DNA from: Marsupella aquatica
Taxonomy: Eukaryota; Plantae; Marchantiophyta
Direction of reading: 5' to 3'
Length of the DNA stretch: 64,000 nt
NCBI GenBank assembly: GCA_973895155.1
Contig: OZ316899.1
Coordinates: 15,093,974 to 15,157,973 of the forward strand
This document shows positions 1 to 23,668 of this stretch, piece after piece; within the stretch, counting starts at the first letter, position 1, and every line of letters starts with the position of its first letter. The translations under genes were made by a program, and so were the position numbers. The notes under the pieces are model-generated. The model did not search any database, had not been told where the DNA came from, and saw nothing but the letters and a program-made list of their open reading frames with translations.

Positions 1-1439
1 CTACCATGGGTTACATTTTTAGCGACAATCTCATGAAGACCATTGATCCAGAGTCATTGCAAGAAGCTCCTCCGACCTGCCCTCTTGCCATTGTTGATTT
101 TAGCCCCCAACAATCCAAAGCCAAAATTCTTGTATACATCAAAGGATGTTGATTACAAAGTATGCAAGATTGACAAGGGAAAGGGAGAGGCTAAGGAAAC
201 AGATGAGGGGACACAAAACAATGACCTAAAAGTGGTTTTGGACCCAAAAGAGGTAGTCAAGATTATGAATATGGCCCCTTGATTTGAGACAGTTGGCAGT
301 CGCAGTGGGTGGGTTAATCCTCATGCCAAACCCACGCGGATGATCCGAAGGATTATTGAATCCTTGTCAAAACCGGGAGATTTGGTTCTAGATTTTTTCT
401 CCGATGGCCAAGTCATGAAGACATCATTTTTTTGCGATAGGGAATGCTTTGTTTATTGTGACTCTCAGTTCGAGAGGCATTTTGAGGAAGCTTTTGCTTC
501 CTACCTTTGCGAGAGAGTTCCCTCACTTAAAGCCCATTGTGAATCACTTGCTGAAAATTCTCGACAATGGGCTACCACTGGTGCGGCTGTAGCTGTCGCT
601 GTTGAATCCAACGGTTTTGAGTTTGAAGATGTTGCTGACAAAGTGGCTGAAGGCGTAGAGGCATCAAAGGGGGCATATGTCAAGAATTTGGATGACCGTG
701 TTGGTCAAGGTGAGCCTTACAATGTAGATGATGATATTGGACTTTCACCAAACCGTTCATCTGGTTTAGATGACATCCCTCCGGGGCCCAATGAAGTTCA
801 GGTTGATGATAACTTGGACAAGGATGATCCCAATCCAACACCGCCAGGAGGACAGATGGAGCAAATGGAAGGAGCAAGGGTTGATACATTTGATCGTCTT
901 TCTTCAACAAATCTGATCAATGAAGGCGCAACGAGGCTTGGAGATTCAAATGAAGCTGAAACTCAAGAATTGACTCCGGGGGAGATTGATGGATTGCCTG
1001 ACATTCCCATCAATCCAGGAGAAAATTCATCAACGGTTGTTGACAACCAGGCAGGTGCTTCAACTTGTCTTGACACACTCTTTTCAGCTTCTGATGACAA
1101 ATTGGTGTTAGTTCGCTCACACTCGGGGAGTCCTATTGTCCTTCCGCTATCAAAAAAGAAAGGGAATAGAGTTGAATCAACTGGATGGAGGTCATTCCAG
1201 ACGCATGATGTTACGTGTGGAAAATTGGGCCAAATAGAGGCCAAGAAATACCATTGGATGCTGCTCCTTCAATTCTAAATAAGGAGGAGTATAAGAGGGG
1301 AGAATTGGGGTTGATAACTCATGTTTGGACTTCACCTTATTGGGTAGAACAAAGTACTTCAGATGTCAATTTTGAAATCCAACAGGAGCTTGGTGCTGAC
1401 ATGATTATTGATGAATACGGATCTCTTATTTTGGGATGA
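1..1439 (+). pseudogene. C-terminal part of ParB-like/amino (N4C/N6A) DNA methyltransferase-like gene, followed by an acidic tail
   Basis: 313-460 reads VNPHAKPTRMIRRIIESLSKPGDLVLDFFSDGQ...R...D, matching the beta-class amino-MTase motif X/I pattern (HPxxKPxxLxxxII...S.PGDxVLDPFxGxG). In-frame stop at 280-282 and a frameshift near 1200. Confidence 0.7.
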
Positions 1440-1869
1440 AATTCAGCCTTTGACTTTCTATTTATTCATACCAGTCTAAAATACTTGGTCAAGTGCAAGC
1501 TAGAGGGGTACTGAAAGGATCTCCATTTTCTCCACCAAAAGGACATAGGTCCTTGGTAAAAGCAATCACTAGAGGACAAAAAGACCAAAATGTTACATGG
1601 AATGGCCAGGATTGTTTTGGTGAGATTGAAAGGTAAGATCTTGCATGCCAAATCTTTGGAAGTGTGTCCACATATTTCGGAATTTAAGAAGAGTGCCCAA
1701 TCTTTTTGGAAGTGTGCACAATCTTTTTGGAAGTGTGCCCAACCTTTTTGGGAGTGTGCTCAGCTAAATCTTAATGACATTTATACTCCTTTCACTCTCC
1801 TTTTTGAGCTAGTCCTTGGGGACTCCTTTGGTACCCCTCTAGCTTGCTTTTGACCACTTCTTGGTCCAC

Positions 1870-3067
1870 AGAATGCGCTCACCAATTAAAGTCTCCATAT
1901 CCGTCTACCCATTGTGGGGCTTCTAAAAATGGTATGTAGGTTACTTTTTTTCTTTTTTGTCAGCTGTTGTCCTGTATTTTTGGACTGAGACAATCCAAAC
2001 CAAAGTTCACTTTTGGTTTTTTCTCTAAGAATGGTGTTTGGTGCACTTGCAGAATCGAGACCTGGTCCCGTCAAGCGGAAGTTGCTGATTTTGGGATTCT
2101 GTTGAATTCCAAAGCAAGGGCACATCCAGGAATATTGTCACCTCAAGTGGAGTGCATTGGGATAGAAAAAATGGTATTAGTTGCATGTATACAGAACGAC
2201 CAGGGCTCCATGAGTTTCTAAAGTTGGTTTTTGACAGATTTGACGTTGCAATTTGGACATGTGCTGGGATACCGCGAACAATGAAAATGTTGAGCATGAT
2301 GTTCACTGCTGAGGAGAGGTCAAAACTTCAGTTTGTATTCACACAGGTAGAAGCTTTTGACACAGGCATTCAAAGGCGTGACATTACAAACGGAAAGGCA
2401 AATGTGCTACTCAAGGATTTTTGGGTGGTATGGAATGCATTTGGAAATCTATATGATGAAACCAACACCCTCCTTGTGGATGACTCCCCCCTTAAGGCAT
2501 TTGCCAACCAGACATGACCGGATTATTTCCAGTGCCCTACACGCATGCCAATCGTGGAGATAATCTTCTTCTAGCAATTCTTTGGCCATGTCTTGAGAAA
2601 CTATCACATGCAAGTGACATTTGATGTTATCTTCTTCTCAACTCTCCAAAGTGGTCTCTTTGCACATGAAGAGAGACAAGGCAACAAATGAGATTACTTA
2701 TGATCAACTTAGCAAGAGATTTGCAGCAAAAATTTAGAAGTCACAGTTTACGCATAGTGTGTTGGACCTCAACACCAATGAGATTCCTTGGAATGTAAAA
2801 CACCGTATATGTAGTTTACGTCCTGAGGCGGAACTTGACAATGTACTTGTCAACTCACTTGCTAAATTGTTTTTAGGAAGAGACTATTCAGGTACATATA
2901 GAGAAAATCCCAGACACTTTTTGCGGGAGATTATAGCCATTAGGAACAACACCATCAAATTTCAACTCCCTGAAAGTGAAGGGTGTTGCAACCGTGACAA
3001 TAGGGTAGATAGGAAAGGAGATAGGGGCACATGCTCAAATACACATTGTACGGAGCACTTGATTTAG
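1870..3067 (+). pseudogene. NIF/FCP1-like HAD-superfamily phosphatase with Cys/His-rich C-terminus (copy 1)
   Basis: ERPGLHEFLKLVFDRFDVAIWT...LLKD...VW...YDETNTLLVDDSPLKAFAN, then LFP.PY...D.LL...WPCLEKL. A GT-AG intron at ~1932-2052 is conserved in both copies. Contains stops. Confidence 0.8.
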
Positions 3068-3317
3068 AGATTTAATTGACTCGTGTTAAGCCCCTTAGAT
3101 AGTAGAAATGGGTTCGTATTCATTGTAAATTTTCAGATAAATTTTATATAAATATTTAATAATCTATTTGGAATGATGTGATTTTGTTCACACTATCAAT
3201 GGTCCTTAAATGGGGATGACATATTTTTATTAGTTCCTATCCTACAGTTCTTTGTGAATTATTAAATAATATAATATGTATTATTTATTAATATAATATT
3301 AATGTGATTTGGCCTAT

Positions 3318-3396
3318 AAAGTGTACATTTAGGGACACAAAAGTGTACATTTGGTGTCTTGAAGTGTACATTTGGGGCCATGAAAGTGTACATTTC
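3318..3396 (+). repeat. Subterminal tandem repeats, AAGTGTACATTT core x4 (~21-23 bp period)
   Basis: Seen directly; three inverted copies at ~18627-18683 in cassette copy 2. Confidence 0.85.
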
Positions 3397-3444
3397 AAGA
3401 CTCATTTGTGAAAAAAAGAAAATACACTTTTAATGAATAGGTTG

Positions 3445-6146
3445 ATGAGTGGAAAGCCATGGTGGAGCTACAAACTGGGAAGGAGTTGAAGTGTGTTCGG
3501 TCAGATAACGGTGGCGAGTATAACTCCAATGAGTTTGACCAATTTGGTCGGGACCTTGGCCTCAAGCGTCATTACACTGCACCGGAGACCCCGCAACAAA
3601 ATGGAGTGGCATAATGGTTGAATCGGACATTGCTGGAGAAAGCACGCAGCATGCTATGTAGGTCCAAGTTGCCCAATAATTTTTGGGCTGAAGCTGTCAA
3701 CCAAGCTGCATACGTTTACAACCTATCACCACACAATAGTAAGTTGATGCAGACTCCATTTGAGTTGTGGTATAAGAGACCTGCTGATTCCTCTAGACTC
3801 CAAGTTTTTGGGTGTGCTGCCTGTGTTCACATTGAGCAGACACACAGGTCTAAGTTGGATCCCAAGTCTAAGAAATGTATTTTTCTAGGCTTTGGTCCGG
3901 GGCAAAAGAGCTACAAATTGTGGGATCTTGTCGATTGCAAGGCAGTTGTGAGCATAAATGTTGTTTTTGATGAAGAATGGTTGTCAAGAACCCGGGATGA
4001 TTAGGAGGAGTAGGTGGAGGAACCCACTATGGTGGAGCTTGATGGTGTTGAGGAAGCTATTGGTTCCTCTGGTAGAGGTGTAGTTCCTCAATTGAGGCGA
4101 TCCACAAGGGCCAATCTTGGCCAACCCCCTGATAGATTTGGTTTTGCAGATCCTCGTGTTCATGTTGTTGAGCATGACAATGATCCTGGTGTTATATTGC
4201 TCACTGAAGATGGACACCCCTCTAGCTATGAAGAAGCTATGGCCTCTCTATAGAAGGATAAGTGGATGGAGGCGATGTTGAAGGAGATGAATTCTTTGAA
4301 GAAGAATTCAACTTGGCGCTTAGTGGACATGCCTTGCAGGACGACACTGGTTCCGTGTAGATGGTTGTATAAGAATAAGCAGGATGGCACTTACAAGGTA
4401 CGCCTTGTGGCCAAAGGGTACACCCAGAAGGAGGGCTTGGACTACACAAAGATTTTCTCACCAGTTGTCAAACTCGCTACTATCCATGTTTTACTTGCAA
4501 TTGTGGCATTCTATGATCTTGAGTTTGATCAAATGGATGTAATTACTGCTTTCCTGCATGGATTGCTTGATGTGGAGATTTATATGGCTCAGCTTCCAGG
4601 TTTTATTGACGAGAAGACCAGACACTTGGTGTGTCAGCTCTTGCGCTTGTTATATGGATTGAAGCAGAGTCCCAGACAATGGAATAAGCATTTTGATTCC
4701 TTCATGTTATCACAGGGGTTCACGCGGAGTGAACATGATTGTTGTATTTACATGAAGGAGGTGGAGAATTACTCACGCTTTGGTTACATTGTGCTGGCAC
4801 TGTACGTGGATGACATGCTGATCCTGGCTGAGAATAAGTCTGATGTTGCCCATCTGAAAGCAATGTTGAGTAAGGAGTTTTCAATGAAGGACTTGGGTCA
4901 GGCCAAGAAGATTTTAGGGATTCATCGTGATAGGGAGCAGAGGCAACTATGGTTGTCTCAGAGGCAGTATTTAGAGAAAGTACTTGCCAAGTATGGGATG
5001 GAGAATGCAAAACCAGTTGGTACTCCATTGGCTTCCCACTTTAAAGTCTCAAATAATGTTTGCCCTTCTAGTGAGAGTGATAGACTGGCGATGAAACAGG
5101 TTCCCTATGATAGTGTTGTGGGTAGTTTGATGTATGCAATGACATGCACTAGACCTGGCATTGCCCACACCGTTAGCATTTTGAGTAGATTTATGGCAAA
5201 CCCTGGTAAACTTCATTGGGAAGCAGTGAAGTGGGTTTTGCGATATCTGAAAGGTACCTTAGATTGTGGGATTCTATTTGACGGTAAAGCAGACTCTACA
5301 TTAGAGTTGGGAGGTTTTTGTAGATTTAGATTATGCTGGTAATTTGGATAACAGGAAGTCTACTACAGGCTATGTGTATATGCTGGGTGGAGGTTGTATC
5401 AGCTGGAAGTCGGCAACTCAATCCCGTGTTGCATTGTCTACTACTGAGGCTGAGTACATGGCTGCCTGCGAGGCAACCAAGGAGCTGATCTGGCTACGGA
5501 GATTGGTGAGTGATTTGGGTCTTTCACATGAAAGACCGGTGCTGTTGTGTGATACTCAAAGTGCTTTGCATCTGGCTAAACCCTGTGTTCCATGCAAGGA
5601 CAAAGCACATTGATATTTGTTATCACTTCATCCGTGAGGTGATTGAGATAAAGCAGATGTTTATGGAGAAGGTGGCTTCAGAGGAGAATGCAGCAGACAT
5701 GCTTACTAAAATTTTACCTACCAGTAGTTTTAGTCATTGTGTGGATATAATTAATGTTAGTGCCAAACCGGAGACTATGTAGATATGTTACTTAGTTACA
5801 TATTGTATATCACCTGACTCATTGTGTGAACTAGAATCAAGGTGGAGATTGTTAGGAATTGACTCGAGTTCTCGACTATAGTTAGTTTGGCCTTACTAGG
5901 GTTAATTGACCCTTGGTTAGTTTAGGATAAGATCCACTTATTTAGGCCCACACATCTTAGTCCCCCTTGGGGGGTATAGATTGGAGGGAGAGCATTCTCT
6001 CCCTCATTCTTCACATGTTCAATCTCATGAGCTATGGATCCTTCAAGAGTTTCTCCATGATCGTGATGTCTTGTTGGTGTAGTGTGAGATTGAGTGCTCT
6101 CATGTTCCACATTGCTGTCTAGTCTGGAGTTGACGGTTTTCCTACA
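3445..6146 (+). mobile_element. 5'-truncated Ty1/copia retrotransposon (INT core-RT-RNaseH-PPT-3'LTR)
   Basis: RSDNGGEY and TPQQNGVA (integrase), RSKLDPKSKKC, RLVAKGYTQKEG, LYGLKQSPRQW, LYVDDML (RT), STTEAEY and ARTKHID (RNaseH) in copia order. Stops and frameshifts present. Confidence 0.95.
5850..6146 (+). repeat. Copia 3' LTR (~297 bp)
   Basis: PPT AAGGTGGAGA immediately before TGTTAGG; ends CCTACA. Confidence 0.75.
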
Positions 6147-6254
6147 TGTAGGTACTCACTTATTGATTCACATGAAGTCTTGTGGAAACAGCTTATTACA
6201 TTTGGAACTTTTTGTGGCACTATAATGATACAAGTTCAATCCCCGTGTATTGCA

Positions 6255-6745
6255 CGAAAGATGTTGTTAAGTAAAAGATGTCATTACACAAAAGATATTT
6301 TTAAGTAAATAAATCATTGCGCAAAAGATGTTGTCAAGTAAAAGATGTAGGTAAGCAAAAGATGTTGTTAAGAAAATATGTGGTTGCTCAAAAGATGTTG
6401 TTAAGTAAATATGTAGTTGCTCACAAAATGTTGTTAAGTAAAATATGTCGTTGTGCAAAAGATGTCGTTAAGTAAAAGATGTCAATGTTGCGCAAAACAT
6501 GTTGTTAAGTAAAATATGTGGTTGCTCAAAAGATGTCATTAAGTAAAATAGTAGTTGCTCAAAAGATGGCGTTACATGTAATTTACTAAAATGTATTGTT
6601 CATGAAAAGATGTCAATGCATAATAGATGACCTTGTGCTAAAGATGTAGTTGAGAAAAATTAGGGTGCAAAAGATAGCTTGACTAACAGATTTTATTTGT
6701 TAAAAGATCTCATTGCATAAAAATGTCATCAAGTACAAGATGTCA
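6255..6745. repeat. Degenerate tandem repeat (AAAAGATGTTGTTAAGTAAA-type units)
   Basis: Repeated AAAAGATGT/AAAATATGT cores in units of ~35 bp. Confidence 0.85.
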
Positions 6746-6989
6746 TGACAAAGAGAGATGACATTGACCACCAAAGTATAACAAAGTGAGAATCATTTTT
6801 TACTTTATTTAAAAAAATCCTTTCAAAGCTTAACCCCCCCCCCCCCCTCCCGCTTTCTTCTGGTTCCCTTCTTTTGCTCTTTTTTAAGCTCCTTGTTCTC
6901 TCATTGATTAGATTGTGCACTAATTTATTGACTATCTAACATTTGCAACTAAACTCCTATCATTATACAGCAGCACCTGTACGCATGAA

Positions 6990-7140
6990 AGATATAGCAT
7001 GGATGGTAGAAAGAGAAACATGGTATTGCATGGATGGTAGAAGGAAGAGCGCTGCAGGGTGTAGCATGCATGATATAACATGGATGGTAGAGGGAAAACA
7101 TGGTATAGCATGGATGGTTGAGGGAGGAGCATGGTATAGC
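6990..7140. repeat. ~30-bp minisatellite (ATAGCATGGATGGTAGA...), ~5 units
   Basis: Seen directly. Confidence 0.8.
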
Positions 7141-10100
7141 ACTTTGTATAGAAGAGTTTGTCTTTTTTCTTCTAGCTTGGAAAAGCTAGCATCTACTTTT
7201 TCATTCACACCAAATATTAATCACTCTTTCTTTAGTCCTTCCACTTTTTGCAGTTTTTGTTTTTTTCCAAAAAGCCACTCCAAATTTGAATGACAACCAC
7301 CGCATAAAAAGGCGTAACATGTTATTATAGTTTCTGATTGAAACTTAGAGTAAGTTTTAGCTCTGCTTGCAGTAAACTAGAGGATCATCTTTTGCTTCTG
7401 AATGAGAATTGGTATCTTTTGGAGTCACCTCGGTCACTTTTTGCCTCGCTTTTTGCAATGAAGCATTTTTCAGTCTGCTTCCCAATTTATGAAAAATTGA
7501 AGTCATTTTTGACAAAAAAAGTGTTTGCGAGGCCGCTTCACATTTGAAGAGGGGGCTATGTGGAAGGAAGATAATAAGGAAAGTGATAATTATTCTCAAC
7601 TTTTTTTCTTTTTGCTATCCCTTGGAGATCACTTGAGACATAACAAAATTCTTTCCATAATTTTTGGCTTTTGAAAAGGAGATATGAAGAAGATAAGAAA
7701 GATACAACTTTGATGAAGAATTGCCTTGGATGGAGTTAAACAATCGCTTTGAAGAAAAGGATCAAAAAATTGCTTTGAGCAAGGAATAGCTTTGGAATTT
7801 GATGGCAAGTTTGAAAGAAGATTGTGAATCCGCCTGATGCCGGTTGAAGGAGTTTGTAGGTTTGCTGGAAAGCTATTTCCAAGAGTTTCAAGGAGAAATT
7901 TTGAGCCACTCAAAAACAACAACTTGAAAATGTCTCAAACCAATTTCATGTAGGAGTTTTGGTTATTTTCCCCTTAAAACATTTTATACCTCTTTTTCCT
8001 CATTTGAGCCTCTCTCTTAGTTAAGTAGGAGTAAGATACAAAGTGACTTAACTGGTCACCCTTAGCAATTTAGATATAGAGAGGTTTAGATTCATCGGTC
8101 CCTACTTTTAGATAGGATTAGGTTTTTAGTCTTTTGGAGCTTTTGGCATCTCCAAGCTATTGAGGGAGACTTACATTTGGACTCCCATGAAAAATATTGG
8201 TGTCACTTCTTCTAAATTCATCCTTGACCAATTTGGGTCTTTCTCTCACCCAAACTTTGGGCTTAGGAGAGAAGATTGAGTAAAGGGGATTTGTACCACC
8301 ATTTTGTGTTGAATTCATCAATGTCATTTACTCAGTTGTTAACTCAAGCTTGGAATGAATGTATGAATTGTAGGAAATCAATTTGCTATGGATCATTAAA
8401 GAAAAGCTTTGAAATCTAGTACTTAGAAAATAGTATTGAGTTTTATGACTTAAAACCAATCTCCTTAAAGAGTATATGGCAGTCATAGATGAAAGAAAAC
8501 AAATTATTTATTGAGAAGGAGAATAGTTTAATATCAACCACCTAAGCAAAACCTAAGTAAGAATTGTTCTAGGATTCTGTGTGTAGAAAAAAGTAAAGAA
8601 GTCACTTTATGATTTCGAGTTACATAAATCAAGCATAAATAGTTTCACTTATTCCCTATGGAAACAAATTCAGGTCCTTTAGACACACATCACATACTTT
8701 TGTGTTCTTGCACTTACCACGTGCAGCATAAGGACAAACAACGAGCTTCCACTTGCTGGAGGTTTGACCTTTTGGAGAGGGCTTGTTATCGCTGCAGAGA
8801 GACTAAGTGATCATAGCGGGAAGGAAATTACAAGTTGTCGCTCAGATGTTGGTAAAGAAATATGAGGATAGTGAGCCGGCTGTGTTGAGGTGAGAGCAGG
8901 AATAGTCGGCCATTGGGCTGAGACGCAGGGAGAAGGGAGCAGACTGATAAAAGGAAAGAGTAAGAATGGGAACCAACTGAACTTGGGACCTTTGTAGGTG
9001 AGGTTTTTGGGGACTTGATATGGCTCTGCAAGACAGGCAAGGCATTCATACCGCATGCCGGATGATGGACCGGTTGAAGGTGGCACTTAAACAGTGAGGA
9101 AACAAATCATTCAAAGTCACGCTCCTTTCTCATGGGTAGGAGATGCCCCTGAGGTAGATTTTGATAGGATCTTTGGCATCAAATCTGAGGTGAAGTCCAG
9201 AATTTGACTAGCACCTGCATTGGATTTCTTTAACAGTACTGTGGTTTGCATTGGACTAAGTAATTTGTGGGGAAGTAAACTGTCAATTTAAACCCTGCTA
9301 TTTTGGACAGTTGCTTGGGGGAATGTAGATGTGACCATGGAGGTTGGAGAGTACAGAAGTGAGGATGGAGTTGTCTTGTCATGTTTGGAATCCTCAGGGA
9401 AATGACAGCAGATTGGGGGCTAGTTTGTTTGCTCGGAATGTCTTGTCTACTGTTCCTAGCAGATTTTTGTTGTGACAAGAATATGCATTAGAAGAAGGAT
9501 TATTTTCCTGATATTTCTTGATAACAATTTCCTTGTTACAAAAGAAACTTGTATGGTTCACCTTTTCCTGTTTGCTCACTTGTTACAATTACCCATCAGA
9601 ATGGACCTAAAGTTAAAGGATGAATGGGTGAGTGATTTGGAGGAGTGGAGTTGATTGTGTTTACCCAAGGAAGAAAAGCCAGTTAATTATTTTCATCTAA
9701 TTCTTTCAACCTGGAGAGACGATCAATTAAATTTTGTGGTTTACTGAGGTTTTTTCCAATTCTTTCAATCTAGTGAGGTTCGCCCCATGCATAATCTGTG
9801 ATCCAAATATGGTTGTAGTCAGATTCATTAATTGGAGAAACATTTATCGTTGTTTTTAATAATTTCATTATTTGTTTTGGGATTATCGTAGCACTAGGAG
9901 AATAAACACCTCAGTAAAGTCTTTCAAAAGCATAAATATTTTCCTCCTGTTACACGTGCTCTGTAGGATACTTAGACAAGTTCTTTACCTCTCCCGGAAG
10001 TTCAGTTAATTCCACAAGTAAGTCTAATTATTCATGGGGTGGAATAAATTTCTCCGTGAGTTTCACTAGGCCTTAAACCCTAAACCCTAAAGCACAGATT

Positions 10101-10792
10101 TTACAAACCAATTTGTAGGCGGATAGGAAAACATTCTCACATCCAATGTTTGCTGCAGAGGGCACAAAACAAATTCAATGTTCAGGGATTCTTCACAAAA
10201 AATGACTCCAAGCTACTTGAGGCCCTTGCAGAAACTCTTCTCTCTACAGAAAACCGGACTTGAAAAAAAACTTCTTCCAACTTGCATAACAAACTGAGAG
10301 AACTCAGACCGAGTAGACTTCCAAGGAGATATCCTTTTCCATTATGTAAGTTTTGTCGACAAAGCCTTGCATTACAAATAAGGAGCTGTCTAACCTGCAA
10401 CGAACCAGACTTGTTGACGTGTCTGAAAGAATGCGGAAATAAATGGCATTACGAACATGCATGGATTAACTATGTACCGATGGATAAAATAGCATCATAA
10501 TCCTCATTGTGAACGCATGGCGACTCTTCACTAAAACAATGAGCAGAACCACTTCAGTGCTAATACCGAACATGCGTGTCTTGGCGGCAGATTTATAGCC
10601 TGCCCCACTAGAAGATACGATTTTTCAGAACATCATCAACTAACTCAGCAGTTATTATTCTAATTAGAAATAGCAGCGAACAATCAACGTCAAAATCCTC
10701 AATGCAATCCACTGGAAACTTGAGGCAACACCTTTATCAGCCTCGGTCCTTTTGTGTGCACGATGAAGTCATCTACTTTGGTGTACATCGTA

Positions 10793-13351: not shown

Positions 13352-14297
13352 GCTCCTCACGCTCGCTTCACTGGATCGTCTCTCCGCACACTATAATTAG
13401 CGATCAGCCTACCAGTAGCCGCAGTTTAATTAACTACTAGGATAGTCTCAGAGTGGGTCAAACCCTCTAGTAGGTCTATCTTTATCAAGCCTTCCAAGAT
13501 GTGTTCCAAGTCGCGTATTTGCGACCGGAACAACAATCCCATTCTGACATTGTAAATTCTATTACCTCTTCTGTGGTGGTAGTGGCTCCAGTCCGACTCT
13601 CGGCCTATCCAAAGTTCAAATGAAAAATCCTGCAAAGTACCACAGACGGGAGTTGAAGGCAATCCTGCTTTCTCTTGAACAGTTAGTGCGACAGGTCTTG
13701 CGCGCTACACGTTGTCCCTGCGCAGCGAAGGTTTCAGAGCGCAACTTACATAGCCAAACCAGGAGATTGCAGAAACCAGTGGAAGAATCTACAATATGAC
13801 TTCTCATACTATGAAAACCAAGAACCTCGTTGCTCTACGCTCTTAAATTGTGTAAGGTTGGCTGATTCGCTCGACTCTGTGTCTTTTTGTTGTCGTGAAA
13901 CGAATGCTAACAGCAGTAAACTCAATTACAGCAAGGAAAAAGGCTACAGCCACAAGACAACACTGGACTCCATGTTAGAACGCACGAGCTTGTGATAAAG
14001 CCGAAGTTTTGCGTGGGACTCACCCACCAATTGAAATGCAGCCCTCCACTCTCTGGTTGAGCCACGTGGGCATAGGTGCTCCGACCTTAGGACTGAAAAA
14101 GTTGAGTAGTCTGCCCTCGGATCTTGCACGTAATTCTCCTAATGGTTTCAGGTTACCTACCTGTAACCTAGTTCAGGTCAAGTTAGAGGTTCTTGCAAAT
14201 TTATAAAATCAGAGATAATTATACATAATCAATTAAATCATATTTGTTGGATTTTATTTAGTAATAGTGAAGATTGTGCAAGGTGCATTATCACTCA

Positions 14298-14330
14298 CTA
14301 GCCCCATGACCCGTTCTTTGAACTTAAATA
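14298..14330 (-). mobile_element. Candidate Helitron-type 3' terminus of cassette copy 2
   Basis: Minus strand reads GTTC-AAA-GAAC-GGGTCATGGGG-CTAG|T: a short hairpin, then CTRR followed by T. Contiguous with cassette copy 2 once the 14331-18542 insertion is removed. Confidence 0.45.
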
Positions 14331-14944
14331 GGATATATACTTAGTGGACCTCCAAATGCAACTTTTTCTCTTAATGGACCAAAAGTTGCACTTTCTCCCA
14401 GTGGACCCCAACGTTCAGATTCCCTCCCAATGGACCTCCGGGCCCACTCCATACAAGCATGTTCTTTTGAAACACCTTATCACACAGTTCAGGTCCACTA
14501 CGTACCCTGTGGACACCGTGGTTGGTCATGTGTAGTAGGCCGTCGATAACGTTGCAGTCCACAAGCGTCGTAGCCTGGCTGCAATCAAGGGCCACAGCAC
14601 AATGGCTTCCTAGTTTTTGTGGCTATTGTATTCAAAACTACAATTGAACAAGTTTGCGGCGGCATTAGAGCACGCAAGGCCTTCGTGCCCCGGCCTCAAA
14701 GTATTTCAGATTGCATTGGAGCTTGCAAGCGCCGTACCTCCGCTAACCTCCTTGCTTTTATGAAGACATTGTTCATAATGTATACAACTTTTAAAGGAAT
14801 TTTCAAAATTCAAATGTGCCCGCCCTTTATGGAACCCTTTCAAAACCTGTTTTGTTGTCATTCGGTTTGTTTCTCGATGTTTTCTCATGTTGCTTGTTCC
14901 TGCTCATGTTGTTGGTTCCTGTTGTTCATGCTCGTGTTCTTGCT

Positions 14945-15367
14945 ATGTCGACCCTTGAGGATGTGCAAATTGCAATGAAGGAGCGGCCAGACAACATCAT
15001 TGGGCCAATCCTGGTATATGTTTGTGATTTTGCCTCTGATTTCTTGTGGCCCGGAAAGTTCACTTACAGAGGTTGTAGGCATGGGATTGGCGGTATTTTG
15101 GTTTGTTGGAAGTCCATTGAAACAGCGGAGCAATGCAACCACGACCCAATGCTAGACGGGAACAATTGTCATTTGTATAGGTTCCAAATTTTCATGGTTG
15201 ATGTGTATGAGAACATTGGGCCATTCAAGGCCACAATCTTTCAAGTTGCACGAGAGCTTGCGGAGATGAATGCTGACAAATTTGCAGAGTATGGTACCAT
15301 TCGCCAACTTGAGACAATGCACAAGCAAATTGCTCAGATCGATCACATATTGTCTAGTGTGGATTAA
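14945..15367 (+). CDS. RPA70 C-terminal OB-fold/zinc-ribbon-like protein (TIR-element cargo)
   Basis: FTYRGC...CWKS...C.H...LYRFQIFMVD...GPFKATIF...ARELAEMNADKF resembles the Rep-factor-A C-domain pattern YxAC..CxKK..C..RY...D.TG...T.F..AE.L.G..A.EL. Confidence 0.55.
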   Translation: MSTLEDVQIAMKERPDNIIGPILVYVCDFASDFLWPGKFTYRGCRHGIGGILVCWKSIETAEQCNHDPMLDGNNCHLYRFQIFMVDVYENIGPFKATIFQVARELAEMNADKFAEYGTIRQLETMHKQIAQIDHILSSVD

Positions 15368-16224
15368 AGTAGGACAACACTCTGCTATTGTAAATAAGCT
15401 TGTTGTTGAACATAGACATTGCCCTCCTAGTCGTGCCCCTGTGTAAATAAGAGTTGAGAAAGTGATCAGCAAAAGCAATCTTGTGGATGTTGATGTCCTG
15501 ATGTAGTAGGTGGGGGTGACTGCAACAATGATTTCAAAGTTTTGTTTGTCCACCATCGACTCCGCCGAAGAGAAATAATAAGGATTTTGTGCCATGAAGA
15601 ATACATTTTGGTTGTTGTATTCTTGTTATTTCTTCAAGAGATTGGTGGGTTGGGATGATGATTTTGTGTCATTTAGCATTTTCTTGAGCTTCAATGATGA
15701 ATAGTTTACATTTGAGGTGAATATTGGAGGAGCCCTTGCATAATTTTGAAAATGTGTAATTGGTACTTTCTATTGTGTTATGATCCTACAAAGTTGTTTA
15801 TGTATTCACTGAACTCTCTATTATGTACGTAACACATTGCACCATTCTTTTGTATGTTGAGAATATCTAGAATATAGAATTTTACATGGTTATATATTCT
15901 TTAAACTCTATTTCATGTAACACGTCTTAACATTTGTTTCTTTCATGAGAATACATGTTGAAAGACAACATGGTTCACAACTTGGGGAAAGTTATAGCCC
16001 TATTTTGTCACCAATGTGTTCTTGATAATAAATTTGAACTGATCAATATGCCTATGTCAGTGTGTATTGTTGTTGGATTTAGTAAATAATATCCAATGTT
16101 GCTTGATTTCTTGCTCTCTTTGAAGACTGTACACTTGCATGATCTGTTTCAAAAATGAATAGAGTAGACAAGAATGCACAAACCATGATTGGAGGGTATA
16201 CATATTGCACAATGTATTCATTAC

Positions 16225-17700
16225 AGTCATGAAACTCGACTACCTTAACACTTAGCTTTGGCGTCGCTGACTCCGACGTCGAGCTCCCTCATGGTCCAGG
16301 CCCGGATAGGCCATCCAGGGAGGACTTAGCATGGGGAGACTTGTGAGCGATGAGACATGGCGCTAGCAAAGGCAAGGAGCCAAGCTGGTGACACACACTA
16401 AGGGCTTGGACTAGCTGAGAGCTGGTCAGGTCAAGGAGAAATGGGTCAGGCTCAAGGTCAACCGCCCGGACCTCCAGATGGACTTTGAGTTCTGAGGGCT
16501 TGAGTGTGAGCTCCTCTTGGGCCCATGGAGTTGATGCCATGGGCAACAGACGCTGGGGCGCAAGTTATGGCCCGATCCAGGTTGGGCCAATCGGGGGCCC
16601 AGAGCGGCGACAAGACTTGAGGGCCTAGGCATGAGCACTGGGTCAGCCCAATCACAACGGGCTAAGGCACTCTACTTGTGGATGCCTAACCAGAAAGTTA
16701 TGGGCGTTACCAGTTGGTGGCGCGCCCATTATACGCGATAGGATCCGGATTGGGGGCCAAATGTTTAGGGACCAAAGCTGGTCCGGGGTGGCAGGTCTCC
16801 AGAAGCATATATGAGGGGAGTGGCTTCTCCCAAGGGGCTAAGGCCGAGCCGAAGTCGTGAGCCGCGGCGGTCGCAACACTAAGGAAAACTGCCAAACGGA
16901 AACGGCGATATCTTCCCAACGGGAAGTCCGTTGGAGGACTTCTTGGGTGCGTTAGAAAGTTCTCGAGGAGGGCTATGCCCTCCTGAGATCAGCTGGATCT
17001 GGGGACACCATGGGTTCTTGAGGTTTGCGGGTGTTAACTCGCCCGCTTGCCAAATCCTGCCGAACAACAGCCAAGCCGTGTTTAGTCTCCTAAGGGAGCT
17101 TGCGTTGGGGAGGCAAGGCCAAGTAGGTGTGGAGGTTGAGTTCCAAGAGTGCTCGGTCCCTAGACTATCAGTGAGGCAAATTGGGAGTTGGTTGCTAGAG
17201 GCGGGGCCATTCTGGTCCCGGCGTGTTGGGACAAGCTTTAGGACAAGCTACGCTAATTGGGCCATGAGTATGTCCTAAGGTCAGGGCGGTCAGTTGGTGA
17301 TGGATAGGTACCACAGGAAACCCGGGCTGCACCAAAGGAAGGAGCTGTTCTGGACGGACAGTGGGCGTGGGTTCTGGTTCCGGCTTATGGCATCGGGAGG
17401 AGCTATCGCTGACCTATTTACCAACGTTTGTTGAGCTTGAGTTAGGATGCTAGACTTGGCGAGTTCTAGATCCTGAAGGGTTACTTACCGAGGTGCTTGG
17501 TTGGTTGTGCAGACGGTGAGGACCGTTGAGTAGCGGTCATGTAGGAGAGCAAGTGCGGCTTCATATGGGAGGGGCCGCCGGTGGTGCAAGAGGCACTAGG
17601 GTGCTTGCTCAAGGTATTCCGTGGAGGCATTCGGGCACCAGGGGCACTTAGGCGTGAGTGTTGGGATTGGTGAGGGCGTTGGGTGGCTCGGTCCACCACT
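16225..17700 (+). mobile_element. Solo LTR of chromovirus family A (1476 bp), AGT...ACT termini, TSD ATTAC
   Basis: ATTAC at 16220-16224 and 17701-17705; homologous to the LTRs at 28950-30274 and 35983-36934. Confidence 0.92.
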
Positions 17701-17734
17701 ATTACTCACAGTGCAAAAATTGTATTCATGACTC

Positions 17735-18240
17735 CACAGCCTGCAAATGGACAAAACCATTTTTACCTTATACACATGATGGACATTGTATTCCAAGGTT
17801 GCACTTAAACAAAGTTATGACTCCCTTGCCTCACATACAGGCACCAAGGCCTGCTCTAATGGAGAAAACCAAATAATGTTGAACATAGATCAACGTGTAG
17901 CTTGTATACAATATGCAAGTTATATTGTAATTTTGCAATTAGAAAATTTTCATTTCCTCCAACTTTACAAAGACGCCCCCCGCCAAAGCCTGCCCAAATG
18001 GACAAAACCTATTGTATTCAACATAGAAGTATAGTTTGTGATATATACACTTTGTACATTGTACTCAAATTTCACACTTAAAAAAATTCTCATTCCCTTC
18101 AACTTCACAAAGATCCCCCCCCCCCCCCTCGCCAAAGCATACCCAAATGGACAAAACCTACAAATGAATATTGAACTTACATAGAAGTATGATTTGTCAT
18201 ATATACACATTGCACGTTGTATTCAATTTCACAAATATAA
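17735..18240. repeat. 2-3 direct repeats (~145 bp; GCCAAAGC..CCCAAATGGACAAAACC...) inside the TIR element
   Basis: Copies at ~17740, ~17975 and ~18125. Confidence 0.7.
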
Positions 18241-18956
18241 TTTTGTTTGTTTGCTTGACATTACGGTTGATGTTTGTATGCATTGTGGTCAATGTATACA
18301 TTGCTTCACTTGGAACTACAATCATAGTTGACCGCATTTGGCAACGCTGTTGAACACTAAGAATAGTAGAACATATTGTTTTTTATAGTGACAATCTTGT
18401 GTTATAAGAATTGCACAGTGCGTTAGAAGAACATCTCACATGAAATGGTACCTCTGGTGGGCCCGAAGGTCCACTAGGAGAGCGTGTGCAATTTTTGGTC
18501 CATTAAGAGAAGTTGCATTTGGAGGTCCAGTAAGTATATCTCTTGAGCACGTAAATAGATATGGAAAAAAATCTTATCAGCCTATTCATTAAAAGTGTAT
18601 TTTCTTTTGTTCACAAATCAATCTTGAAATGTACACTTTCATGTCCCCAAATGTACACTTTTTGATACCTAAATGTACACTTTATAGGCCAAATCTTATT
18701 AGTATTATATTATATAAATTATAATAATATTATATTACTTATTAGTTCACAAAGAACCAGGGGATAGAGATCATACTTGTAGAAACATTTCAACACAAAG
18801 AAGCCTAGGCAAGGACCATTGATTGATAATGTGTGAAGAAAATGACATACTTCAAATAGATTATAAAATAATATACAATTGTCTCTAAACTTACAATGAA
18901 TATCCAGGGTTGGCACACATTTCTACTATCTAATGGGCTTAACATGAGTCAGATCT

Positions 18957-20170
18957 CTAAACAAAGTGTTTGTTACAATATTTATTTGAGCACATGCCCT
19001 TGTCTCCTTTACTATCTACCCTATTGTCATGGTTACAACTCCCTTTATCTTCATGGAGATGAAACTTGGTGGGGTTGTTCCTAATGGCTATAATCTCCCG
19101 CAAAAAGTGTCTGGGATTTTCTCTATACGGACCTGAATAGTCCCGTCCTACAAATGATTTAGCAAGTAAGGTGACAAGTGCATCGTCAAGTTCCACCTCA
19201 GGACATAAGCTACATATACGATGCTTCACAACCCAAGGAATCTCATTGCTATTGAGGTCCAACACACTAAGCCTAAACTGTGACTTCCAAATTTTTGTTG
19301 CACATCTCTTACTAAGTTGATCATAAATAATTTCATTTTTTGCCTTGTCTCTCTTTATGTGCAATAGAGACCACTTTGGAGAGTTTAGAAAAGGATAACA
19401 TCAAATGTCACTTGCATGTGACAATTTCTCAAGACATGGCCAAAGAATTGTTAGAAGAAAATTGTCTCCACAATTGGCATGCGTGTAGGGCACTGGAAAT
19501 AGTCTGATCATGTGTTGGCAAATGCCTTCAGGGGGGAGTCATCCACAAGGAGTGTTGGTTTCATCATATAGATTTCCAAATGCACTCCATACCACCCAAA
19601 AATCCTTTAGTAGCACATTTGCCTTTCCATTTGTAACGTCACACCTTTGAATGCCTGTGTCGAAGGCTTCCACCTATGAATACAAACTTCAGTTTCAACC
19701 ACTTTTCAACAGTGAACATCATGTTCAATATTTTCATTGTTCGCGACATCCCAACACATGTCCAAATTGCAACGTCAAACCAATCAAAACAAACCTTAGA
19801 AAGTGATAATGCCCTGGCCTTTCTATATACATGCGACTAATTCCATTTGATCTATCCCAATGCACTCCATTTGGGGTCACAATGTTTCTAGATTTGCCCT
19901 TGCTTTGGAATTCAATTTAATCCCAAAGTATTTTGTTAAGATCCAAAATCAGCAACTTCTGCTTGATGCGACAAGGTCTCAATTCTGCAACTGCAACAAA
20001 TACAACTCTTAGAAACAAAACCAAATTTGAACATTGGATTGAGATTGTCTCAGTCCAAAAATACAAGACAATGACTAACAACAAAGAAAACCTACATACC
20101 ATTTTAGAAGCCCCAAAGAGCGTAGGTGGATATCGAGTCTCTAATTGCTGATTGCATTCTGTGAGACCCA
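18957..20170 (-). pseudogene. NIF/FCP1-like HAD phosphatase (copy 2)
   Basis: KLLILDLNKIL (DLN-type HAD motif I), ERPG, LVDDSP; C-terminal ORF 18957-19364 is homologous to 2759-3067. Confidence 0.8.
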
Positions 20171-20219
20171 AAAGTATTTTACATTGATATGAAAAAATGG
20201 AAAGTCAGACAATTTGATC

Positions 20220-23200
20220 TTAGTCTGAAATAAGAGATCTGTATTCATCAATAATGTCAACACCAAGCTCTTGTTGGATTTCAAAATTGACATCCAAAGT
20301 ACTTTGTTCTACCCAATAAGGTGACGTCCAAACAGGAGTTATCAATCCCAATTCTCCTCTCTTATACTCCTCCCTATTTAGAATCAATGGAGCAGCATCC
20401 AACGATATTTCTTGGCCTCTATTTGGCCCACTTTTCCACACGTAACATCATGCATCATGTTCAAGTGACCTCCATCCTGTTGATCCAACTCTATTCCCTT
20501 TTTTCTTGAGAGCGGAAGGACAACAGGACTTCCCGAGTGTGAACAAACAAAAACCAATTTGTCATCAAAAGCTGAAAAGAGTGTGTTAGGACAAAATTGA
20601 AGCACCTGCCTGGTTGGCAACAGTCGTTGATGCACGGGCTTTTGGGGTGATGGGAATCTCACATACTTTGGCAGCCTTCATAGGAATCAATTCTTGGGTG
20701 TCAACTTCATTCAAATTGAGATGCCTCTCTACACCGTCAGTGACCAAATTGGTTGAAGAACGGTTTTCAAATGTATCAATGTCAATTGGTTCTCCAATTT
20801 TGTCTGTTTGTTATTGTAGCGCATTTGGATTGAGACCATCCTTGTCCAAGTTGTCATCAACCTGGACTTCATAAGGGTCCATAGGGATGTCATCTGGACT
20901 TGATGAAGGGCGTGGTGCAAGTCCAACATTATCGTCAACATTGTAGGGTTCTAACAATGATTAAAATAATCCTCTATATCATCCGCGTGGGTTAGCATGT
21001 GGATTCACCCAACCACCGCGAGCACCAACTATCTCAAATTGAGGGACCATATGCAAAACCTTGGTCCGCCTCTTCTGGGGTTAGCATCATTTTTAGATAT
21101 TTGGGTTTTGACACATTGTCTATGTCAACCTTCGCCTTTCCTGTGTCAATCTTGTTGACCTAAACCCTAAACCCTAAACCTCAAAATCCGTATCCTTTGA
21201 ACCAATGAAGAATTTTGGCATCAGGTGATTGGGTTTGAAAATGTCAATTCCTGCAAACATAACTTCTTCAATTTTGCCCCCGCCCCCCCAACATGAATCA
21301 AGTGGGTGCGGTTGATCCTCTCAAGAATAACTCCCATACTCAATGTGGATGGCAAGAGATTTTCATGTCTTAATTTTTGAAGTGAACTTAGGACATTCAT
21401 CGCAAGAGGCCTCAGATGAAAATTATGGCTAAACTTAATGATTGTACAATTTTGTGGTAGCTCCACGATGTATTGCAAAAGGACCAAAACTTTTGCTTCT
21501 GTCCACTGCTTTTGATGAAGTCAACAATGGCAAGTGGGCATGTTGAAGATGATCCACTGTTTTCATTAGATTGTCACTAAAGAACGTGACCCATGGTTGG
21601 CTCCGAGAATGTGTCCCTTCGCCAAATTTCTGGCAATAAATGTCATAAAGGCGCATCACCAAAGCTATTGGCAAGATTGCACTCTCCCTAGTATGATTTG
21701 GCTTCAACAGATTTGACAAATAGAATTCACTAGTTGCTCTTCTACATCTGCTGAACTCTGCATCAACACTCAGCAATGGAAGAACCTCTTCTACTTTCTT
21801 CCAGTCGGTATCCAACGGGAAATTCCTTGCATCCTTGTTGAAGTCGTATTCTTCAATAAGAGACTTGAGCTTCCTGACTTTTCACATCCTTTGCAAGCTC
21901 CTCTATCGAGGGGATGTTAGATTTATTAGTGGCATCTTTCTTCAGCAATGCCTTTCTTGACTTCACTTGTGTCAGGATTTACATGATGTATCTTTGTGAG
22001 ATCAACTCACCATCAAAAGGACAAAACATGGCCACGTAATTGCTATTTTGGACTTGTCATTTCCTTCCACCCCAGCTCCATCAGGAAGTTTCCCATGCAG
22101 CCACATCTCACATACTAAACACCACAACTCAAAAAGATTGTTGTTCGCAAAAAGTAGCCAGTATACATTTTGCAAGTCCTTCCTCCCATAGACATTCTTG
22201 CCAGAGCCAACCAATCCTACAATCCAAAAGGAAAGCTAGTTAGCTATCCCCAACTCAAGCGTTGGAAACAAATAGAAACAAAAGGCTGAAAATTCATTAT
22301 AATGTGTGATAATAGCTTTGGATTGAGATGGTCTCAATCAAAAACAAAACTCAAACCAAACATTCCAATACTCAGCAAAAAAATTGTGTCAGATTGAGAC
22401 CATCCAAATCCAAGATTGAATTACTCTCTATGGTAGAGAAATGCATATAAATCAATCACATTTATGACCTGAATTTTTGGTTGTCTTGAGCAATTGTTTT
22501 ATTGTCGCCATGTTTTGGTTTGTTTGGTCTTCCATATTCAACAAACTACCGCCTCACATGGACAACTATATCTTTAAAGCAAGACTAAAACACCGTCGTG
22601 CTATTGATGGCATTCAATCTCATGGAGTGCTCAACAAGTATTGTAGACGGTGCGCAATCAGAGAATATTTTGGACTTCCTGAATTCTAACTTCTTGGCCA
22701 ATTGGGTGAGCTTGACATCCTTCTTTGCCCAATCACAAATCCATCTCGCAACTCTTGCAAAGTGCTGACCACTAATGGCCAGAAATTGGACCTCGCCCTT
22801 TTTCACTCCAGCCAAAAAACCCTTCCGGTCCAACTCCATATTCTCATAGTATAGTACCTTTTTTTGCTTGGCGTTAAAAGGAATCAAATCCGTAACATGA
22901 GGCTTGTGCCCAAGTGTTTTGACCATGGAATCAACAATGTCTTGCACATAATCAGAATTTAGCATCCGATAGCACAATCTCGCCGGTGCTGGTAAATTAC
23001 TTTTGACCGGGATCAAAAATATCTCATTTATCCCAAAAGTGTAGTATTTCTCCATTTGTTGCAAAAACTCATTCACTTCTAAGACTTTTTCTCCTCTGGA
23101 GCGTGAAGCATATCACCCTCATCTTCAACATGTAACAAAAAATCTACAAGAGTTGAATCCACAACTATAGTATCTATTTTTTGCTTCTTCTTCCCCCTCA

Positions 23201-23356
23201 ACTTCTTTTCATTTGGAAGCTTCTTCTTCTCAATTGAAGCAGGTTTCTCGACATGAAGCTTCTTTTTCCTTTGATTTCTCTTCCCTATCACTCTTTCCAT
23301 GGTTGTTGCTGCAGTAGTTTGTGTCTTTGTTGTAGTTGCTAGAGTTTCTTTGGCTG
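20220..23356 (-). pseudogene. Lys-rich leader + ParB/Srx-like domain + helical region + amino-MTase-like domain + acidic tail; intron-containing, decayed
   Basis: 22585-23076 has YRMLNSDYVQDIVDSM...FLAISGQHFAR...LNAIN (ParB/DGQHR-like). Intron ~22468-22217 with AG|GT donor, CTAAC branch site and TAG acceptor. CPLAIVDF at ~21530 and GWVNPHA at ~21000; the motif I region is deleted in this copy. Confidence 0.65.
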
Positions 23357-23668
23357 AGTGGTGGACTTTCTCACCCAGCGCCCTCACCAATCTTGGCACC
23401 CATGCCTAAGTGTGATGCCTAGCCAGGAATCACTAGGCCAGTTTAAATGATAAAATAAGGAGTAAACCCTGGAAACACATTAGTATAGTAGCAAAAAGAT
23501 GGAAAATATAAACAATTAAGGGTGGCTATGGAACCCAAGCCGAGGCCGGAAGTAAGAATGCCGGGGGAGGGAACACAATTAGGGTTAGGGCGCGCTAGGT
23601 GCCAGCGGCTATGGGTAACTAACGGGAAGGAAGACCAGTCAGGGAGGGGTAAGGATCGATCGCAAGGA

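Follow-up and report, generated by a model that had tools for sequence, protein, structure and literature searches.

Inverted, decayed copies of a ParB–methylase-like and NIF-like gene cassette in the liverwort Marsupella aquatica as likely cargo ends of a large transposon

Two inverted copies of a two-gene cassette

A stretch of 64,000 nucleotides (nt) of the liverwort Marsupella aquatica (assembly GCA_973895155.1, contig OZ316899.1, positions 15,093,974 to 15,157,973 of the forward strand; hereafter the window) was found to carry two copies of a cassette consisting of a gene for a protein with ParB/Srx-like and beta-class methyltransferase-like domains (gene 1) and a gene for a NIF/FCP1-like HAD domain with a Cys/His tail (gene 2). 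Copy A (1–3446, plus strand) and copy B (18576 to approximately 23400, minus strand) are inverted relative to each other and only 15 kb apart. A repeat search of the window returned 14 inverted pairs of 62–412 nt with 74–93% identity, and blastn aligned A243–374 with B21079–20947, A718–1486 with B20945–20172, A1856–3373 with B20175–18627 and A3362–3449 with B18660–18573, at an overall identity of about 80%. Copy B is without approximately 344 nt (A374–718) that encode motifs X and I of the methyltransferase-like domain and are kept in copy A; copy A, in turn, has lost approximately 330 nt from the region that separates the strand-4 motif from motif X, and contains a stretch of 370 nt (1486–1856) that copy B does not have. 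Copy A runs off the window start, with its 5' part outside the window, and copy B stops at about 23,400. A first-pass annotation, made from the letters of the sequence, had described two inverted, decayed copies with complementary deletions; this was borne out by the repeat search and blastn, and all motifs quoted there were found in the sequence. The copy limits given there (3449 and 18543) had to be moved, as the conserved terminal inverted repeat (TIR) places the last bases of the element at 3446 in copy A and at 18576 in copy B.

The order of parts in an intact gene 1 is an N-terminal domain, a Lys-rich linker, the ParB/Srx-like domain, a helical region, the beta-class methyltransferase-like domain, an acidic tail and a small C-terminal module. 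What had been taken for a Lys-rich leader is the linker; relatives (P0001, P0003, P0004 and the L006 open reading frame (ORF)) have an N-terminal domain of approximately 200–250 amino acids (aa) upstream of it. We consider it likely that the window copies are two old, independently inserted, dead cargo ends of a large TIR transposon, belonging to a lineage shared among liverworts and carrying a self-recognition cargo of pseudo-enzymes.

Related loci place the cassette in a transposon

Eight related loci were compared with the window: L001 and L002 from Riccia sorocarpa, L003–L005 from Calypogeia fissa, L006 and L008 from one European Nucleotide Archive (ENA) assembly, and L009 from a Logan run. 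The first-pass annotation had asked whether the two genes occur together in other copies, and in all nine loci, the window included, the ParB–methylase-like gene is followed by the NIF-like gene. Both window copies end in ...AATGAATAGGYTGAT and then diverge at once, the flanks being unrelated. This end is the reverse complement of the terminal repeat ATCnnnnTATTCATTAAAA, which is kept in the window (3446 and 18576), at both ends of Calypogeia L003, in L004 and L005, and in Riccia L001 and L002. L003 holds a complete element of 13.7 kb, with TIRs at 2514 and 16254 and a flanking 4-bp AGAG target duplication. On its minus strand lies a transposase of approximately 1,200 aa in three ORFs (Pfam DUF7869, E = 1.4e-32), followed by a palindrome-filled spacer and then, on the plus strand, by both cargo genes. 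The transposase gene also lies upstream, on the opposite strand, in L004 and in Riccia L002, where it showed 33–39% identity and E-values down to 4e-76. In line with the TIR, the 4-bp duplication and the DUF7869 transposase linked to the cassette in homologous loci, the earlier proposal that the cassette is the cargo of a mobile element was upheld. A literature search for DUF7869 gave no match. The Sola superfamily reportedly has, in its original description, a 4-bp target duplication, as seen in L003, and the layout of the DUF7869 carrier, which matches that of the algal element Sola1-1_Ec32 described below, makes it a candidate Sola-type transposon.

An inverted arrangement with only 15 kb between the copies would also be expected if these were a host gene pair copied by segmental inverted duplication and not cargo. 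Both copies, however, end at the same base of the conserved TIR, with unrelated flanks and only about 80% identity between them; moreover, several genomes hold the family in multiple copies, it is linked to a transposase, and both TIRs and the target duplication were seen around the full Calypogeia homologue. A duplicated host gene pair thus appears extremely improbable.

The closest proteins to those of the window were from Calypogeia, at 56–65% identity. When the ParB exon was compared by phmmer with 1.84 billion representative proteins, 58 matches were obtained, and those with a named source came from Riccia sorocarpa and Calypogeia fissa; the bacterial-type origin suggested in the first-pass annotation is, if meant as a recent one, not supported by this distribution. 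A protein search with a family profile returned 3 proteins, a number that is uninformative on distribution, as the low-complexity tail is suspected of having swamped candidates. In the Riccia genome the family numbers at least 53 gene models, spread over all chromosomes, several of which are annotated as a single protein that joins a ParB–methylase-like part to an FCP1-homology domain. Near-intact cassettes with few or short introns were found in L006 (ENA ERZ22147080, ctg39529l; frames of 526, 688 and 373 aa) and L009 (Logan SRR18067536; 815 and 325 aa), and judging from these reading frames live copies probably exist in some organisms.

Some further features of the related loci were recorded. 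The Calypogeia element of L003 is nested in a repeat whose GCGCTTA...TAAGC units flank it on either side, immediately beyond the TIRs (2426–2468 and 16299–16502). L004 contains two transposase copies in opposite orientation (1–2654 and 5267–8097), 90–96% identical to that of L003, and a gene called there shows Pfam DUF8039 ahead of the DUF7869 part. In Riccia L001, a second partial cassette (2388–4418; motifs X to I plus the NIF-like gene) is oriented like the main copy and located about 8 kb upstream of it.

Gene 1 encodes a domain with a predicted ParB/Srx fold

The ParB exon of the window gave an AlphaFold2 (AF2) model with a mean predicted local distance difference test score (pLDDT) of 93.1 and a predicted template modelling score (pTM) of 0.86. 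The top Foldseek matches of this model were Noc, ParB, Srx, PadC and KorB (probability 0.99, E = 5e-3 to 2e-2). A wide structure search with VIA over 48,161 PDB chains placed ParB/Srx-type proteins at all of ranks 1–8, with Z-scores from 7.7 to 4.8 (PadC 7.7, KorB 7.5, a serine kinase 7.1, pNOB8 ParB 6.7, Srx 5.8, SbnI 5.8, Atu1540 5.4 and human Srx 4.8), the next row scoring 3.6. By its model, this part of gene 1 has a ParB/Srx fold, and the ParB/Srx-like domain named in the first-pass annotation is thus borne out at the level of predicted structure. At the sequence level no match to ParBc was found in Pfam or NCBIfam, and a ParB profile run against PDB sequences matched only Lys-rich low-complexity proteins. 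The canonical ParB motif for binding of cytidine triphosphate (CTP), GERRxRA, is not kept; in its place the family has (I/V)SGQHSARAA, in which G, Q and H are invariant and which we take to resemble the DGQHR type of DndB-like proteins.

The methylase-like domain is without the catalytic motif

The second domain of gene 1 showed the order strand-4 PLAIVD, about 180 aa, NPxAKP (motif X) and VLDFFSGG (motif I) in the window, in L003–L006 and in the family proteins P0123 and P0124. This is the beta-class amino-methyltransferase order that had been read from the window at the outset, and the best relatives in the PDB were M.RsrI and M.PvuII. Sequence homology to methylases is confined to motifs X and I: the intact L006 ORF matched Pfam PF01555 with 29.1 bits (cut-off 26.7) only over profile positions 103–207, the family profile matched M.RsrI in the PDB with E = 2.5e-8 over 46 aa, and hhalign to the methylase of phage SfV, the only match of a phage search (E = 6e-3), gave E = 8e-6 over 49 columns. 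A Foldseek search with an AF2 model of the methylase-like ORF (pLDDT 49) returned beta-class methylases on top, over 257–292 columns with TM-scores of 0.13/0.28; the matches were M.RsrI (E = 7.8e-7), M.PvuII, TTHA0409, HpyAVI, CcrM, MboIIA and the rotifer N4CMT (E = 2e-3). A methylase fold of the N-terminal half is a reasonable, not a proven, reading of the motif order and the local Foldseek alignment.

The catalytic motif (D/N/S)PP(Y/F/W/L) was found nowhere in the 16 family proteins, all of which were scanned whole, while in the SfV enzyme, which served as the control, it was present as DPPY at residue 35; it is also missing in every copy with a readable strand-4 region. The strand-4 Asp is followed by FSPQQ in window copy A and FIKSS in copy B, by FSRKG or FSKKG in Calypogeia, by FTRE in P0123 and P0124, by LLRQP in L006 and by VTHPN or LTHPD in Riccia, and a W-x3-E-L helix comes soon after these residues. 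Motif I reads FSGGQ and not FxGxG, and the acidic residue expected after strand 2 is missing, by reading, in Riccia. Because (D/N/S)PP(Y/F/W) is missing across a deep divergence, its loss is a trait of the family and not the decay of single copies, and gene 1, as judged from its motifs, is probably not an active DNA methylase. The contrary explanation, in which gene 1 would encode an active enzyme that methylates DNA at N4-cytosine or N6-adenine and so marks its own element, draws on the beta-class motif order, the good conservation of motifs X and I and of the Asp at the end of strand 4, and the fact that the best structural matches (M.RsrI, M.PvuII and the rotifer N4CMT) are active enzymes. 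It appears quite improbable given that the PP(Y/F/W) part is missing in every relative from at least five sources, with replacement residues that differ between lineages, that motif I and the Riccia strand-2 region depart from the expected pattern as described, and that Marchantia MpDN4MT1, unlike gene 1, has TSPPY (bioRxiv 10.1101/2021.02.12.428880).

The NIF/FCP1-like gene has an altered motif I

The domain encoded by gene 2 matched Pfam NIF (PF03031) in the window above the cut-off (2152–2517, E = 3.5e-6), in L006 over profile positions 1–159 of 160 (E = 5e-18) and in Riccia (E = 6e-13 to 2e-14). In seven copies (window copy B, three Calypogeia copies, L006, L008 and L009) motif I, DxDx(T/V), was found as DLN(K/G)(I/V), and in Riccia as DVEGL, so that of the two Asp residues the nucleophile is retained but not the general acid. 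The other HAD motifs are canonical by eye, with T in IWTCA, K in KDF or KDL, and DDSP. Both cargo "enzymes" are thus without canonical catalytic motifs, and their sequences look like those of a DNA-recognition kit, not of a methylase. Of the mobile element with a DNA-modification module that had been proposed in the first-pass annotation, the mobile part stood, with a TIR and a transposase; the methylating part is unlikely to hold, the catalytic motif of the methylase being missing and DLN or DVE standing in place of DxD.

Palindromes differ between lineages at corresponding positions

The Calypogeia elements contain 10–23 copies per locus of the palindrome GCCTCGAGAnnnTCTCGAGGC, compared with approximately 0.6 expected. 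They occupy the spacer that separates the divergent genes, two introns of gene 1 (intron 1 and a later one), the stretch from one cargo gene to the next, and a place near the element end. This exact palindrome was not found in the window. A variant with the same GAGA-N3-TCTC core and co-varying arms, GGATTGAGAnnnTCTCAATCC, was present three times in copy B (0.01 expected), twice in gene-1 intron 1 (22320 and 22391) and once in gene-2 intron 1 (20036), the last with a decayed counterpart in copy A (approximately 1983–2002). The Riccia palindrome, (C/G)GGGACGCGTCCC(C/G), is different and occupies the same relative places, among them two annotated introns (1 and 4) of the P0057 gene. Conserved position, joint change of both arms and tracking of the lineage are what the sequence of a binding site co-evolving with its reader would be expected to look like, and the same co-evolution argument has been made for the ParB-oxygenase cargo of red algae in a preprint on Bostrychia (bioRxiv 10.1101/2025.02.11.637652).

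A possible self-recognition system

If the cargo serves self-recognition, gene 1 would recognise its own element through the palindromes, in the manner of ParB or KorB at parS or operator sites, and the methyltransferase-shaped domain, having lost its catalytic loop, would act as a DNA- or cofactor-binding module and not as a methylase. The NIF-like partner could bind, or weakly act on, a phosphoprotein such as the carboxy-terminal domain (CTD) of RNA polymerase II, and the net effect would be to favour transcription or mobility of the element through anti-silencing or self-recognition. A wider and tentative proposal is that giant transposons of land plants might carry a three-part self-recognition system, in which a ParB-like reader co-evolves with element-specific palindromes in its own introns and two pseudo-enzymes, acting through binding, recruit the transcription machinery at the element or shield it there, and that this system might be older than the divergence of the two main liverwort classes and have been kept ever since. 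If true, it would be a eukaryotic counterpart of the KorB and ParB–parS regulatory systems.

The same features bear on an explanation in terms of transposition mechanics, in which the ParB-like protein, by bridging or condensing the arrays of palindromes, would pair the ends of a very long element or hold the excised DNA, much like ParB–parS in partition complexes. ParB-type proteins bridge DNA, giant elements need end pairing, and the palindromes are spread along the whole element, near the end too. Yet the CTP-binding arginines of GERRxRA are replaced (GQHSARAA here), and a partner related to CTD phosphatases is more suggestive of a function in transcription or chromatin, so that a role in transposition mechanics seems rather unlikely.

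Several points weigh against the interpretation of the window copies as cargo ends with a pseudo-enzyme self-recognition kit. The 4-bp target duplication was observed on one element only, that of L003. A whole-window homology search found neither the transposase nor the N-terminal domain of gene 1 anywhere in the window, and the link to the transposase comes from the homologous loci. The AF2 model of the methylase-like ORF was poor (pLDDT 49, with a core of 75–93; pTM 0.32), and a rigid-body VIA scan of its confident half (residues 107–228) retrieved only generic alpha/beta folds, with no methylase on top. The cargo enzymes could use a non-canonical active site, and the Glu at the general-acid position of the Riccia NIF-like domain might still work. 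Finally, the link between the ParB-like domain and the palindromes is inferred from their co-occurrence and from the published algal analogy.

Relation to known systems

Transposon cargo that joins ParB-like domains with DNA methylases or oxygenases has been published for algal Sola1, Plavaka and other transposons (PMC12477816; bioRxiv 10.1101/2025.02.11.637652; background in PMC4738411), and a literature search found no report for land plants or liverworts, for a NIF-like partner or for the loss of the catalytic motif. Algal ParB-methylase cargo is thus already known; what is new is a land-plant version with a phosphatase-like partner. The nearest counterpart is the accessory gene of Sola1-1_Ec32 in Ectocarpus, which codes for a protein of 1104 aa with a ParB-like and an N4C/N6A methyltransferase domain (PMC12477816). 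Sola1-1_Ec32 is likewise a giant TIR transposon, with the ParB-like/PF01555 fusion on the strand opposite the transposase, as in L003; it differs in residing in a brown alga and in that no phosphatase-like partner or palindrome arrays were reported there, nor was the state of its catalytic motif given, the two having been compared by description only. In red algae, the Plavaka cargo genes PAG2 (PF01555 plus SET) and PAG3 (ParB-like plus 2-oxoglutarate (2OG) oxygenase) occur with inverted-repeat arrays (bioRxiv 10.1101/2025.02.11.637652). As in the liverwort cassette, a ParB-like domain, a DNA-methylase domain and inverted-repeat arrays beside the ParB gene are joined in one cargo, and binding to the own element was proposed by the authors; in Plavaka, however, the ParB and methylase domains are on separate proteins with SET and 2OG partners and the carrier is of the EnSpm/Plavaka type, whereas the liverwort cassette has one fusion protein, a NIF-like gene and palindromes inside introns.

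Phage and plasmid ParB-methyltransferases, M.RsrI, M.PvuII and the SfV enzyme share the order IV-X-I and homologous motifs X and I with the liverwort family. These prokaryotic enzymes have DPPY or SPPY (DPPY in SfV) and the liverwort family has neither; it adds introns, an acidic tail and extra domains, and shows no ParBc sequence match. Marchantia MpDN4MT1a/b and the rotifer N4CMT are likewise prokaryotic-type beta-class folds in eukaryotes; unlike the liverwort cassette, these active host genes carry TSPPY or SPPY, and neither fusion to ParB nor carriage by a transposon has been reported for them. The likeness to VANC of the Arabidopsis VANDAL transposons, a transposon protein that recognises short motifs of its own element and alters its epigenetic state, would be a functional analogy only, the proteins being unrelated; VANDAL/VANC is cited as a precedent in the Bostrychia preprint (bioRxiv 10.1101/2025.02.11.637652).

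Transposon cargo that recognises its own element is rare, VANDAL/VANC being the worked example and the algal ParB genes having been proposed in 2025. The liverwort family extends this theme to land plants, with a phosphatase-like partner, a probable non-methylase and palindromes that differ between lineages at kept positions, and its proposed pair of reader and site is directly testable. It also warns against annotating such models as host genes under "DNA methylase N-4/N-6" or "FCP1 homology", as was done in the Riccia genome.

Decay and features of the window copies

Both window copies are pseudogenes without functional consequence; their features are listed in Table 1. In gene 1, in-frame stops occur in the tail of the ParB exon and in the second exon, and copy B has a frameshift after PLAIVDF. 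In gene 2, motif I is frameshifted in copy A (KLLILGFC*), and in copy B a stop follows right after motif I. In comparison with family contigs from four sequencing runs, the window more often had A/T where the contigs had G/C: substitutions from window to contigs numbered 58–79 for A>G and 43–66 for T>C, versus 22–28 for G>A and 25–45 for C>T. Such a bias towards A/T in the window is what one would expect if the repeat has been methylated and is decaying. Read depth, which is not a copy number, suggests many family copies in two related organisms.

The two introns proposed in the first-pass annotation have GT..AG ends exactly at 22468 to 22217 (minus strand) and at 1932–2052, splicing being predicted from sequence. 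A search for RNA runs found none, and no splice-like joints were seen in the four sequencing runs, which behave as DNA; a recurrent joint from 22373 to 22476 in their contigs was rejected as a splice, as it has AG..TT ends and represents an indel between copies inside the intron. An intron after PLAIVDF was likewise rejected, since the frame reads straight on in L004, L005, L006, P0123 and P0124.

Table 1. Features of copies A and B in the window (positions are those of the window; relatives named under Basis are described in the text).
Positions	Strand	Feature	Basis
1–152	+	Copy A gene 1: end of helical region and strand-4 PLAIVD, then FSPQQ (no PPY)	ORF 6–152; tblastx to Calypogeia L003 11468–11551
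283–1275	+	Copy A gene 1: motifs X and I (NPHAKP...VLDFFSDG), then long acidic low-complexity tail	Stop-free stretch; homology to L006 ORF; Pfam N6_N4_Mtase E = 2e-3 over 21 aa, below cut-off
1209–1436	+	Copy A gene 1: conserved C-terminal module of about 75 aa, no fold assigned	tblastn with L006 ORF residues 611–684
1486–1856		Stretch in copy A only, with five 21-nt tandem units at 1655–1774	A/B alignment gap and direct repeats
1932–2052	+	Copy A gene 2: predicted first intron GT..AG, with decayed family palindrome	Sequence; counterpart of B 20036–20056
2053–3067	+	Copy A gene 2: NIF/FCP1-like HAD domain and Cys/His-rich tail	Pfam NIF; tblastn with L006 NIF gene
3319–3446	+	Copy A: subterminal repeats of about 22 nt (AAGTGTACATTT) and TIR, last base 3446	Repeats; TIR comparison
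18576–18692	-	Copy B: TIR (end = 18576) and subterminal 22-nt repeats	Repeats; TIR comparison
18957–19976	-	Copy B gene 2: NIF-like domain, motif I LILDLNKILWD then stop, Cys/His tail	ORFs; tblastn with L006 NIF residues 12–361
20036–20056		Family palindrome GGATTGAGAnnnTCTCAGTCC in gene-2 first intron, copy B	Pattern count
20223–20447	-	Copy B gene 1: conserved C-terminal module	tblastn with L006 ORF
20945–20947		Copy B deletion point: about 344 nt with motifs X and I gone relative to copy A	blastn
21224–21881	-	Copy B gene 1: helical region, strand-4 PLAIVD, next helix and strand; frameshift and stops	tblastn; frames
22023–22216	-	Copy B gene 1: second exon (VYWLLFANNNLFELW... region), interrupted by stops	tblastn with L006 middle ORF
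22217–22468	-	Copy B gene 1: predicted intron 1, GT 22468 / AG 22217, palindromes 22320–22340 and 22391–22411	Sequence
22469–23088	-	Copy B gene 1: ParB/Srx-like exon (ISGQHFARVA), two in-frame stops near 3' end	phmmer; AF2; fold searches
23079–23399	-	Copy B gene 1: Lys-rich linker	ORF; relatives P0001 etc.

Three further observations were made in the window. The unit repeated five times at 1655–1774 is TTTGGAAGTGTGCMCAAYCTTT (21 nt) and resembles the subterminal 22-nt unit AAGTGTACATTTGGG of both element ends; these tandem units may be a remnant of an inter-genic repeat region or a nested derivative. The terminus of copy A adjoins the middle of a Ty1/copia integrase frame (3447–3620; ORF 3459–3614, ...KELKCVRSDNGGEY...), so that either an older copia element was the target into which copy A was inserted, or a truncation of the copia element lies at this point. 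Farther along, at 40869–41563, four hairpins of the form TACTAGCGCC-N4-GAGCTAGTA, unrelated to the palindrome of the cargo element, lie in an AT-rich stretch at 40–42 kb (GC content 0.30).

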